A stretch of DNA of 63,091 nucleotides, counting the filler, from Octopus bimaculoides (taxonomy: Eukaryota): NCBI RefSeq assembly GCF_001194135.2. It is 5 parts of 5 records of this genome, joined end to end, with 100 filler letters (N's around TTAATTAATTAA, not from the genome) between each part and the next. Parts side by side here need not be neighbours in the genome. Positions count along the whole stretch, not along the records: positions 56,546 to 63,091 come from NC_069009.1; 4 more parts are not named here. One strand, given 5' to 3'. Under the pieces are notes generated by a model that ran no database searches, was not told the DNA's origin, and was given only the letters and a program-made list of their open reading frames with translations. Made by a program: the position numbers and the translations under genes. Below, in pieces: positions 56,832 to 62,558 of this stretch. Every line of letters begins with the position of its first letter. Position 1 is the first letter of the stretch.

Positions 56832-56974
56832 TGCTCAAAGATACCACGTCGAAACCAGAAATTGTCAGCCAGTTTAAAGTGACCATCATCACTGAGGTGT
56901 ATTCCAAAGAAATCCAACATCATAGTGAACGCCCTGTGTACCCTGCTCTTTAACAGGATGTCTGTCTTTATTTC
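56832..56974 (-). CDS. OGFR: OGFr-like gene, 143-nt exon EIKTDILLKSRVHRAFTMMLDFFGIHLSDDGHFKLADNFWFRRGIFE + 2 nt, phase 0 to 2
   Basis: Acceptor ctcctttcctttctcctcatag and donor GCA|gtaagc. RVHRAFTMMLDFFGI matches RLxRAYxLMLxFYGI of OGFr. The next exon would lie beyond the segment end at 56546. Confidence 0.9.
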
Positions 56975-57171
56975 CTATGAGGAGAAAGGAAAGGAGTACT
57001 AAAAGGAGAGGATCTTACGGATAAACAATTAATTAAAATTAGTCTTTAATAGTTAGTTAGTGTTGTAAGGGTAATTATTGCTGTTGTCTGGCCCTGGAAC
57101 AGTTATGATCCTGACGGACCTCTGTTCTAAGAGATTCCAGTTGTCACAAAGTTTGAAACGAATATAAAGAT

Positions 57172-57207
<36 letters not shown>

Positions 57208-57262
57208 TTTACCTAGCGTGTCATAGTTTATTAACACCTGTTGATATATAGACATATAGTCA

Positions 57263-58612
57263 AGGTGGAGAGCTGGCAGAATCGTTAGCACGCCAGGCAA
57301 AATGCTTNNNNNNNNNNNNNNNNNNNNNNNNNNNNNNNNNNNNNNNNNNNNNNNNNNNNNNNNNNNNNNNNNNNNNNNNNNNNNNNNNNNNNNNNNNNNN
57401 NNNNNNNNNNNNNNNNNNNNNNNNNNNNNNNNNNNNNNNNNNNNNNNNNNNNNNNNNNNNNNNNNNNNNNNNNNNNNNNNNNNNNNNNNNNNNNNNNNNN
57501 NNNNNNNNNNNNNNNNNNNNNNNNNNNNNNNNNNNNNNNNNNNNNNNNNNNNNNNNNNNNNNNNNNNNNNNNNNNNNNNNNNNNNNNNNNNNNNNNNNNN
57601 NNNNNNNNNNNNNNNNNNNNNNNNNNNNNNNNNNNNNNNNNNNNNNNNNNNNNNNNNNNNNNNNNNNNNNNNNNNNNNNNNNNNNNNNNNNNNNNNNNNN
57701 NNNNNNNNNNNNNNNNNNNNNNNNNNNNNNNNNNNNNNNNNNNNNNNNNNNNNNNNNNNNNATTTCGTCTGCCGTTACGTTCTGAGTTCAAATTCCGCCG
57801 AGGTCGACTTTGCCTTTCATCCTTTCGGGGGTCGATAAATTAAGTACCAGTTACGCACTGAGGTCGATGTAATCGACTTAATCCCTTTGTCTGTCCTTGT
57901 TTGTCCCCTCTATGTTTAGCCTCTTTTGGGCAATAAAGAAATAAGAAATATCAGCACACCGAGCGAAATGCTTAGAGGTATTTCATCTGTCTTTATGTTC
58001 TGAGTTCAAATTCCGCCGTGGTCGACTTTGCCTTTCATCTTTTCGGGGTCGATAAATTAAGAACCAGCTGCATACTGGAGTCTATCTAATCGACTGGCTC
58101 CCTCCCCAAAAATTTGGGGCTTTGTGCCTAGAGGAGAAAGGATAAATTAAGTACCAGTTGCGTACTGGATCGATCTAATCAACTGGCCCCCCCCTCCACA
58201 AAATTTTCGAGCCTTGTACGTAGAGCCGAAAAGATTCCGTCCGTCGTCACGTTCTGAGTTCAAATTCCGTCGAGGTTGACTTTACTATTAATCGTTTCTG
58301 CGTCGATAAAATAAGTACTGGTTGGTCACTGAGGTCGATGTAATCCATTTACCCATTCTCCCGAAATTGCTGGACTCGTGCCAAAATTTGAAACTAACAT
58401 ATAGATATTAGTAAGGCAGCCAGCTGGCAGAATTGTTAGCACGCCGGATAAAACGCTTAGTGGCAATCCGTCCGTCTTCTTGTTCTGAGTTCAAATTCCA
58501 CCGAGGTTGAATTTGCCCTTCGTGATTGATAAAATAAATACCAGTTGATTATTGGAGTCGATGTAATCAACTTCCGTCCCCACACCCTAAAGTTACTGAA
58601 CAAAATTTCGAA
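57263..58612 (+). mobile_element. Head-to-tail train of about five family A SINE copies and fragments
   Basis: Repeated gttctgagttcaaattcc and gataaattaagtaccag units in one orientation with three different 3' tails. Lies in an intron of the OGFr-like gene. Confidence 0.9.
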
Positions 58613-58645
58613 CGAATATAGACAGCAGTTGGTGTTTAGACTTAC

Positions 58646-58712
58646 CCTGGCTTCGTGGTTTGTTAACGTCTGTTGGTAGAGGTTGGAACGGACTGTACGC
58701 GATGGAAACAAC
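58646..58712 (-). CDS. OGFR: OGFr-like gene, 67-nt exon (W)LFPSRTVRSNLYQQTLTNHEAR, phase 2 to 0
   Basis: Acceptor ctcttattctttaattcttttaatctag and donor AGG|gtaagt. Completes the split TG|G Trp codon and gives WLFPxR....N.....LTxxE as in OGFr. Confidence 0.9.
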
Positions 58713-58841
58713 CTAGATTAAAAGAATTAAAGAATAAGAGAATGTAGCTGTAATATAATGAAGAAAGATGCTTATTAATTTACCTTGGAACATATAACTT
58801 TTACCTATCATAAGAAAGCAGTTATCAAAGTCCTTTTTTTT

Positions 58842-59224
58842 GTTGGTACTCCTTCGCTTGCGACGACGAGGGTTCCAGTTGATCCGATCAACGGAACAGC
58901 CTGCTTGTGAAATTAACGTGCAAGTGGCTGAGCACTCCACAGACACGTGTGCCCTTAACGTAGTTCTCGGGGATATTCAGCGTGACACAGAGTGTGACAA
59001 GGCTGACCCTTTTGAATTACAGGCACAACAGAAACAGGAAGTAAGAGTGAGAGAAAGTTGTGGTGGAAGAGTACAGCAGGGTTCGCCACCATCCCCTGCC
59101 GGAGCCTCGTGGAGCTTTAGGTGTTTTCGCTCAATAAACACTCACAACGCCCGGTCTGGGAATCGAAACCACGATCCTATGACCGCGAGTCTGCTGCCCT
59201 AACTACTGGGCCATTGCGCCTCCC
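58842..59224 (-). mobile_element. tRNA-Arg(TCG)-like SINE, family B, full length (candidate octopus OR-type SINE)
   Basis: Head ggcgcaatggcccagtagttagggcagcagactcgcgg...gtttcgattccc with a TCG anticodon loop. The body is shared with 53792-54062. Confidence 0.85.
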
Positions 59225-59487
59225 CTTATTNNNNNNNNNNNNNNNNNNNNNNNNNNNNNNNNNNNNNNNNNNNNNNNNNNNNNNNNNNNNNNNNNNNNNN
59301 NNNNNNNNNNNNNNNNNNNNNNNNNNNNNNNNNNNNNNNNNNNNNNNNNNNNNNNNNNNNNNNNNNNNNNNNNNNNNNNNNNNNNNNNNNNNNNNNNNNN
59401 NNNNNNNNNNNNNNNNNNNNNNNNNNNNNNNNNNNNNNNNNNNNNNNNNNNNNNNNNNNNNNNNNNNNNNNNNNNNNNNNNNNNNNA

Positions 59488-60910: not shown

Positions 60911-60953
60911 CTAAGTATCTCTTTCAATATATATGTGTGTGAGTGCGTGTGTA

Positions 60954-61022
<69 letters not shown>

Positions 61023-61603
61023 CTAAGTATCTCTTTCAATATNNNNNNNNNNNNNNNNNNNNNNNNNNNNNNNNNNNNNNNNNNNNNNNNNNNNNNNNNN
61101 NNNNNNNNNNNNNNNNNNNNNNNNNNNNNNNNNNNNNNNNNNNNNNNNNNNNNNNNNNNNNNNNNNNNNNNNNNNNNNNNNNNNNNNNNNNNNNNNNNNN
61201 NNNNNNNNNNNNNNNNNNNNNNNNNNNNNNNNNNNNNNNNNNNNNNNNNNNNNNNNNNNNNNNNNNNNNNNNNNNNNNNNNNNNNNNNNNNNNNNNNNNN
61301 NNNNNNNNNNNNNNNNNNNNNNNNNNNNNNNNNNNNNNNNNNNNNNNNNNNNNNNNNNNNNNNNNNNNNNNNNNNNNNNNNNNNNNNNNNNNNNNNNNNN
61401 NNNNNNNNNNNNNNNNNNNNNNNNNNNNNNNNNNNNNNNNNNNNNNNNNNNNNNNNNNNNNNNNNNNNNNNNNNNNNNNNNNNNNNNNNNNNNNNNNNNN
61501 NNNNNNNNNNNNNNNNNNNNNNNNNNNNNNNNNNNNNNNNNNNNNNNNNNNNNNNNNNNNNATGGTGGAGTGACAAACACAGACACACAAATAGATACAT
61601 ATA

Positions 61604-61760
61604 TATACGACGGGCTTCTTTCAATTTCCGTCTACCAAATCCACTCACAAGGCTTTGGTCAGCTCGAGGCTATAGTAAAAGACACTTGCCCAAGGTGCTA
61701 CGCAGTGGGACTGAACCCTGAACCATGTGGTTCGTAAGCAAGCTACTTACCACACAGCAC
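61604..61760 (-). mobile_element. tRNA-derived SINE, family D
   Basis: cgacgggcttctttcaatttccgtctaccaaatccactcacaaggctttggtc...cagtgggactgaacc. Confidence 0.85.
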
Positions 61761-62187
61761 TCCTTGCTAATAGAAAATGAAAAAAATGTGGCACCTCAAG
61801 GCGACTACCGTACCAGTGATTGTAGGATCTCTAGGAATGATTAAAAAAAGGTACTGAAACCTATTTGAAAATGATACCAGGCTTACTATCATCCCTACAG
61901 GAAGTGCAAAAAATCGTGTTAACTGGAGCGACGCATGTACCGAGAAGAGCATTATCGCTGTGAAAACAACATCCATTCATGAATTTATTTAATAATTAAT
62001 TTTTTTAAATACATATTATTTTACCTGTGAATTTGCGTGTGTAAACTGGGAATGCATACAATGAATGAGCTTCTCTGCCCTAGGTGTACGGAAATCACTC
62101 GTCGAGAAATGGAAGAAAATTTGAAGAAAGAAGAAAAAACAACAACAACAACAATAATAATAATTGTTATGGCTTTTGAATTGGAAT

Positions 62188-62318
62188 GCAGCCGAAGTCA
62201 ACTTTGCCTTTCATCTTTTCGGTGTCGATAAAATAAGTACCAGCTGAGCATTAGGGTCGATGTAATCAGCAAGTCCCCTCTCCCAGAATTGCTGGTCTTG
62301 TGCCAAGGTTTGAACCAT
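62188..62318 (+). mobile_element. Family A SINE, 5'-truncated
   Basis: ccgaagtcaactttgcctttcatcttttcggtgtcgataaaataagtaccag. Confidence 0.8.
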
Positions 62319-62322
62319 CATC

Positions 62323-62497
62323 GCTGGATAAGCGGTGTTGGTGTGTTTACGTCCCCGTAACCTTGCAGTTCGGTAAAAGAAACCGATGAAATAAGTACTA
62401 GGGTTCGATTTGTTCGACTCAGATCCTTCAAAGCGGTGCTCCAGCATGGCCGCGGACAAATGACTGAAACGTATATAAGAATAAAAGAATAAAAGAA
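62323..62497 (+). mobile_element. SINE-like repeat, family E (3' part)
   Basis: ggtgtgtttacgtccccgtaac...ccgatgaaataagtact...gcggtgctccagcatggccgc with an (aataaaag)n tail. Related copies at 33517-33690 (minus) and 36630-36795 (plus). Confidence 0.8.
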
Positions 62498-62506
62498 TGT
62501 ACATAC

Positions 62507-62558
62507 CGTTGTTTGGCAGTGGAATTTCATTCTTGTAAAACATCAAATTTCGGTGGTG
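62507..62558 (-). CDS. OGFR: OGFr-like gene, first visible coding exon (HHRNLMFYKNEIPLPNN + 1 nt), phase 0 to 1
   Basis: Acceptor ttttttttctgttcgtttttcttgacag and donor ACG|gtatgt. The peptide matches the NLxFYxNEI motif of the OGFr conserved region (human NLSFYRNEI, recalled). Orthology to OGFR versus OGFRL1 is not resolved. Confidence 0.85.

Follow-up and report, generated by a model that had tools for sequence, protein, structure and literature searches.

A divergent OGFr_N-domain gene with an altered signature motif in Octopus bimaculoides

Can a copy of a widespread protein domain lose the near-invariant polar residues of its family and still be kept as a gene? The question is raised by the last part of a 63,091-nucleotide window from Octopus bimaculoides (the window being the whole stretch of DNA that was analysed). 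This piece, positions 56546-63091, was described in a first-pass annotation made from the sequence alone as holding a hidden, spliced OGFr_N-domain gene in which the signature motif is altered. The gene reads on the minus strand and is cut by the piece at both ends; four of its exons, termed A to D here, splice to a 113-residue peptide. They are probably the middle four exons of a real, fast-evolving OGFr_N (OGFR/OGFRL1) paralog that was present before Octopus and Argonauta diverged and that selection has since maintained. The OGFr_N family and an annotated Argonauta ortholog are already known, and the octopus member of the family is new.

The gene model is internally consistent. Exon A (62507-62558, 52 nt) encodes HHRNLMFYKNEIPLPNN plus 1 nt, lies between the acceptor ...TTCTTGACAG and the donor GTATGT, and is not the first exon of the gene. 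Exon B (60554-60632, 79 nt; acceptor GTGATCAG, donor GTGAGT) encodes DKTIEDVLTGWFGDYESLEEDPLYFY and the TG of a Trp codon, whose G is supplied by exon C (58646-58712, 67 nt; acceptor TAATCTAG, donor GTAAGT) ahead of LFPSRTVRSNLYQQTLTNHEAR. Exon D (56832-56974, 143 nt; acceptor CTCATAG, donor GTAAGC) encodes EIKTDILLKSRVHRAFTMMLDFFGIHLSDDGHFKLADNFWFRRGIFE plus CA. A pyrimidine-rich tract and an AG precede all four exons, all eight splice sites are canonical, and the phases run 0-1, 1-2, 2-0 and 0-2, with the Trp codon of WLFP split TG/G across exons B and C. The four exons, GT-AG sites and matching phases first proposed were thus recovered at the same coordinates, together with the split Trp, and the peptide given there is exactly the 113-residue splice product. 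When 339-nt stretches of the piece are drawn at random, only 0.47% contain no stop codon. An upstream exon was sought in 62559-63091 and none was found; likewise, no downstream exon was found within the piece, where the 286 nt below exon D are low-complexity. The next exon, which corresponds to the HNxLRITR region of the family and encodes the remaining half of the domain, falls outside the piece, past its limit at 56546.

Family membership is evident from profile comparison. The peptide matches Pfam OGFr_N (PF04664) over profile positions 7-112 of 208 with 88.8 bits (E=4.6e-25), far above the curated cut-off of 22 bits, and OGFr_N is the sole Pfam family that it matches; the family assignment of the first-pass annotation therefore holds against the hidden Markov model (HMM). 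An exhaustive HMMER search returned 662 homologues at E<=1e-3. The gene structure typical of the family, a 79-nt and a 67-nt exon with a Trp codon split TG/G, is also present in the window gene. This vertebrate arrangement was named in the first-pass annotation, and it is indeed found in OGFR of the rhinoceros Diceros bicornis, which has an OGFr_N domain with homologous introns, the 79- and 67-nt exons and the same split Trp. The rhinoceros counterpart of exon D is 152 nt long rather than 143, with the same end phase.

The closest relative is an octopod gene. The best per-domain match is GAB1610318.1 of Argonauta hians, at 123 bits compared with at most 90 for all others; it is a 214-residue, single-domain model annotated "opioid growth factor receptor-like protein 1, partial". 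At the Argonauta locus the exons measure 52, 79, 67 and 143 nt and the phases are identical to those of the window gene, with no indel over 341 nt, and the two peptides share 57 of 113 residues (~50%). Nucleotide identity at codon positions 1, 2 and 3 is 58, 76 and 40%, respectively. Silent sites have been randomised: the proportion of synonymous differences (pS) is 0.83, which is saturated, the nonsynonymous divergence (dN) is 0.40, the same codon is used at only 26 of the 57 identical residues, and GC content at third codon positions differs between the two copies (0.50 against 0.60). As the synonymous divergence (dS) is saturated, dN/dS by the NG86 method fails, and only a bound on this ratio (omega) and the codon-position pattern can be used. 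Even so, open frames, splice sites and exon lengths have been kept in both lineages while silent sites were randomised, and the coding sequence is therefore under constraint. In Argonauta, exon D is additionally followed, 2.3 kb further downstream, by a last exon that is complete and ends in a stop codon. At the same locus (L001), the 3ʹ end of exon B is partly duplicated at 16040-16081 (EYDILEGDLVYINW, then GT); this copy sits in the intron, some 250 nt downstream of the genuine exon.

The window gene is not the only OGFr_N gene of this octopus. The canonical O. bimaculoides OGFRL1 (XP_052823768.1 / XP_052823769.1) has the same intron positions and the same 79-, 67- and 143-nt exons, a long low-complexity N-terminus, and the motifs HHGYIQWLFP and YHNFLRITRIL in their family form. 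It shares the local strings WFGDY and LLKSRV with the window gene. In a neighbour-joining tree of 47 OGFr_N domains with bootstrap, the window gene and Argonauta GAB1610318.1 pair at 100%, whereas XP_052823768.1 groups with canonical gastropod proteins, apart from the window gene. The view that the gene is a divergent cephalopod paralog is borne out by this pairing and by the existence of the canonical copy. Deeper in the tree, the octopod pair joins bivalve second domains weakly, at 55% bootstrap; at that level of support neither a cephalopod-specific duplication nor descent from a bivalve-type second domain is claimed. The canonical locus (L004) has a peculiarity of its own, in that the 67-nt exon occurs twice (23227-23292 and 25005-25070), 1.8 kb apart and with identical translation; either the exon is truly duplicated or the assembly has doubled it.

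What sets the window gene apart is its signature motif. In place of the family's H-x-Y-I-Q-W-L-F-P it reads P-L-Y-F-Y-W-L-F-P, so that the Tyr and WLFP are kept while His is changed to Pro, Ile to Phe and Gln to Tyr. The first part, P-L-Y-F-Y-W(TG), occupies 60554-60570 in exon B, with Pro39 in the His column (60568-60570) and Tyr43 in the Gln column (60556-60558), and WLFP is completed at 58703-58712 within exon C. Columns were scored after the 150 closest cluster representatives, which contribute 164 domains, had been aligned to the HMM. In these closest domains the His column is His in 143 of 164 (87%) and the Gln column Gln in 151 of 164 (92%), and in a vertebrate-dominated set both reach 99%; vertebrate OGFR and OGFRL1 carry both residues, unlike the window gene. 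The replacement of a conserved His and Gln, as first reported, is thus real. The accompanying statement that the framework around the motif is preserved holds only in part: among 52 columns of the region conserved at >=85%, 21 are altered in octopus and 27 in Argonauta. On these counts, the octopus change is one of general divergence and not a surgical change of the motif. In the neighbour-joining tree the window gene groups with neither the canonical O. bimaculoides protein nor the gastropod proteins, and it lacks many family-invariant residues.

The Argonauta ortholog has lost the same two residues in a different way. Its motif reads GDLVYINWLFP, with Leu and Asn in the His and Gln columns where octopus has Pro and Tyr. 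Its second block, which in the family is H-N-x-L-R-I-T-R-I-L-K-S-L-G-E-L-G, has become HTITTVTHLLCSLPHLG, in which H, T, L, L and the closing LG survive but N, R, R, K, G and E do not. Octopus retains N82, R77, Y60, M113 and F116, all of which are lost in Argonauta, and ten derived residues are common to both (D46, S76, T78, Q85, A93, L102, F127, L129, F133 and F140).

Loss of His or Gln is not confined to octopods. Another 24 of the 164 domains are without one or the other, so substitution at these sites, which had been named as a finding that would undermine the case, does occur to some extent in the family. In bivalves, the second domains of Ruditapes XP_060588583.1, Mercenaria XP_053385082.1 and Mactra KAL4225231.1 read YPxFIQWLFP, with Pro at the His column like the window gene, and such His-less domains always stand behind a canonical first domain of the same protein. 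In the cuttlefish Sepia pharaonis, CAE1264549.1 reads NNYIQWLFP, with Asn at the His column. These bivalve and cuttlefish domains mostly keep Gln, unlike the window gene; one unnamed two-domain protein has the same Pro...Tyr pair in its second domain (DPHFIYWLFP). Erosion of the His column is thus recurrent among mollusc paralogs. Sepia pharaonis has two OGFr_N genes on one contig, CAE1264549.1 and CAE1264559.1, of which one is canonical and the other has His replaced by Asn and has lost the second motif; several unnamed transcript-derived proteins, some with two domains, cluster with them. Together these suggest that cephalopods have an expanded OGFr_N family with eroded motifs. In the bivalve Mactra antiquata, the 2438-residue KAL4225056.1 carries three near-identical tandem OGFr_N domains, with Gln changed to His in all three (YIHWLFP) and His to Leu in one.

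Such examples bear on a first alternative, that the window gene encodes an ordinary OGFr_N protein in which His and Gln are dispensable and the activity is that of other family members. The 24 domains speak for it, since they include annotated and evidently retained bivalve and cuttlefish proteins, and so does the window gene itself, in which the YxxWLFP core and the MLDFxG block survive along with most of the hydrophobic positions. Nevertheless, this explanation is rather unlikely. Among canonical and single-domain vertebrate proteins, conservation of His and Gln reaches 99%, and the His-less bivalve domain always has a canonical domain beside it. Moreover, the Argonauta ortholog has given up six residues of the second motif as well, and its protein scores 87.8 bits over 146 profile positions in Pfam where the canonical octopus protein scores 158.4 bits over 176.

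A second alternative, that the four exons belong to a pseudogene or unexpressed relic and look intact only over this short span, is improbable. It would accommodate the strong divergence (51% with respect to Argonauta, 44% with respect to the canonical copy of octopus), the many family-conserved columns that have been lost, and the outcome of a word-index protein search. With the 113-residue peptide this search gave no match, although the index is too coarse to prove absence from the annotation, and with the Argonauta ortholog it returned only the query itself. The word "hidden" in the first-pass annotation is consequently uncertain: the Argonauta ortholog is annotated, and the empty octopus search is not decisive. 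Against a relic stand the 113 open codons, the eight canonical splice sites and the complete Argonauta last exon. In addition, exon lengths equal those of Argonauta despite saturated synonymous sites, and the second codon position is far better conserved than the third (76% versus 40%). The codon-position pattern and the dN of 0.40 at saturated synonymous sites do not describe the decaying pseudogene that had been held out as a possible refutation.

Several points nonetheless weigh against a retained paralog whose domain has changed its use; among them, the unseen gene ends and the stop codon at the last donor also speak for a relic. Because no identical or near-identical protein was retrieved, the octopus gene may be unannotated or weakly expressed. 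Both its 5ʹ and 3ʹ ends lie outside the piece, and the octopus open reading frame is seen only over four exons. The donor of exon D (GTAAGC, 56826-56831) is overlapped by an in-frame TAA at 56828-56830, such that the unspliced frame would end ...GIFEQ. With dS saturated and omega only bounded, a recent relaxation, or even loss, in the Octopus lineage alone is possible. Finally, the functional reading assumes that conserved polar residues mark a functional site, in a family whose biochemistry is unknown (PMC11062026).

A third alternative, that the exons are the His-less second domain of a two-domain, OGFRL1-like protein of the bivalve type with its canonical first domain upstream of the piece, would fit the non-initial exon A, the Pro at the His column and the weak grouping with bivalve second domains, but it is quite improbable, given that a six-frame HMM search of the Argonauta locus found no other OGFr_N exon within 13.8 kb upstream or 10 kb downstream, that the Argonauta protein model is single-domain, and that the 55% support may reflect long-branch attraction.

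Structural models cover the Argonauta ortholog and a canonical protein of the horseshoe crab Tachypleus. An AlphaFold2 (AF2) model of the Argonauta ortholog, built on a 91-sequence family alignment, is mostly helical with a small hairpin and has a predicted local distance difference test score (pLDDT) of 84.3 and a predicted template modelling score (pTM) of 0.79. The Tachypleus model (pLDDT 92, pTM 0.88) has the same order of secondary-structure elements. Foldseek searches of the PDB with the Argonauta and Tachypleus models gave best E-values of 0.86 and 0.41, respectively, with template modelling (TM) scores <0.4, the noise of helical repeats, and a sequence search of the PDB produced only chance streptavidin matches (E>=0.002). 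Among viral models, the only significant match of the Argonauta model is an OGFr-family protein of a Marseillevirus (E=4e-6, TM 0.57-0.65).

The family is not known to have any enzymatic activity. An enzyme label for the family has no basis, as no related fold was found in the PDB for two confident models, and with no tested basis for "enzyme" there is none for "pseudo-enzyme" either. A possible link of OGFr_N to a nucleotide-modifying enzyme family was dropped when a search of the literature gave no supporting paper. Vertebrate OGFR bears imperfect repeats at its C-terminus as well as nuclear localisation signals, and it has been described as the receptor for [Met5]-enkephalin (PMC11062026, PMC5876317), and OGFRL1 is described as of "largely unknown function" (PMC11062026). 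Octopus vulgaris is reported to be without opioid precursors and classical opioid receptors, yet it has OGFR (PMC12919962). By analogy with O. vulgaris, whose transcriptomes are reported to be without those precursors, the window protein would be unlikely to serve as an enkephalin receptor.

If the fold of the Argonauta model extends to its ortholog, the window protein would be a compact, mostly helical OGFr_N domain. The role of the family's conserved polar residues would have been given up, that is, the His and Gln of HxYIQWLFP and, in Argonauta, most of HNxLRITRILKSLGE. In the octopod lineage the His and Gln sites look unconstrained, because Octopus (Pro, Tyr) and Argonauta (Leu, Asn) disagree at them. 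Constraint on these sites may thus have been lost before the two lineages split, and new constraint may have arisen elsewhere, as the ten shared changed columns look newly fixed. The ancestral site is probably unused, since the fold is kept and the conserved polar residues are not. Judged from sequence conservation, the scaffold has most likely been kept and put to a different or lesser use, for example, binding a partner without the ancestral ligand or partner site. A repeat of the canonical copy's role by the window protein is unlikely.

The introns of the gene are rich in repeats and interrupted by assembly gaps. All four runs of N are intronic and no exon is touched by a gap. The intron between exons A and B (60633-62506) contains the gap 61043-61561, a (CTAT)n/(CTGT)n microsatellite and fragments of a short interspersed element (SINE). 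That between B and C (58713-60553) contains the gaps 59231-59486 and 60221-60372, an intact SINE (59557-59809), an interspersed repeat of about 385 nt (58840-59226) and (CT)n, and that between C and D (56975-58645) contains the gap 57308-57761 and several SINE copies. The gaps adjoin repeats, namely SINE, the 385-nt repeat, (CT)n and (CTAT)n. The Argonauta gene, the canonical O. bimaculoides gene and rhinoceros OGFR all have exons A to D in direct succession; for this reason, and because the peptide aligns to Argonauta without gaps, no coding exon is hidden in the missing sequence. Contig order and orientation fit the gene.

Other features of the piece concern these repeats. The introns are filled with a single kind of SINE, ~250 nt long, of which there are at least six copies or fragments (57248-58573, 59557-59809 and 62174-62307); every one of them runs opposite to the gene. 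The O. bimaculoides OGFRL1 locus holds related copies that are 73-88% identical. Neither ARAGORN nor Rfam recognised anything in the piece, SINE copies included. The flanks of the gap 57308-57761 (454 N; region 57248-57948) align to neighbouring parts of one intact SINE copy, 59564-59616 and 59623-59809, leaving only 6 nt unaccounted; the gap may in truth span no more than a few bases, or two copies of the SINE may be joined across it. The repeat at 58840-59226 is 93.5% and 92.6% identical over 385 nt to two copies in the OGFRL1 locus and represents a young repeat family. Together with SINE matches of 84-88% at that locus, it places the piece in an Octopus genome. It carries a 120-codon open reading frame with no Pfam match, and the other long open reading frames of the piece likewise match nothing in Pfam. 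Directly before the gap 61043-61561, the stretch 60746-61042 holds long microsatellites of compound type, (ATGT)n / (CTGT/CTGC)n / (CTAT)n; they occur twice with the same end, ...TCTCTAAGTATCTCTTTCAATAT (60905-60931 and 61019-61042), a pattern suggestive of local duplication or of stutter in the assembly. The remainder of the piece consists of repeats.

The significance of the window gene lies in its family. OGFr_N is a widespread eukaryotic domain whose function is disputed and poorly understood, and a conserved paralog that drops the most conserved polar residues of the family provides a natural contrast for what those residues do. The gene adds to the evidence for several OGFr_N copies with eroded motifs in cephalopods and bivalves. 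It corrects or extends the octopus gene annotation and opens no new kind of system. A stronger proposal, possible but doubtful, is that octopods retain a natural "site-dead" OGFr_N from which most near-invariant polar residues have been lost since before the Octopus-Argonauta split. If that were true, comparison with the canonical octopus copy could reveal the role of the HxYIQ and HNxLRITR residues, and the retained gene would hint that the domain has taken on a new role, as a scaffold only.

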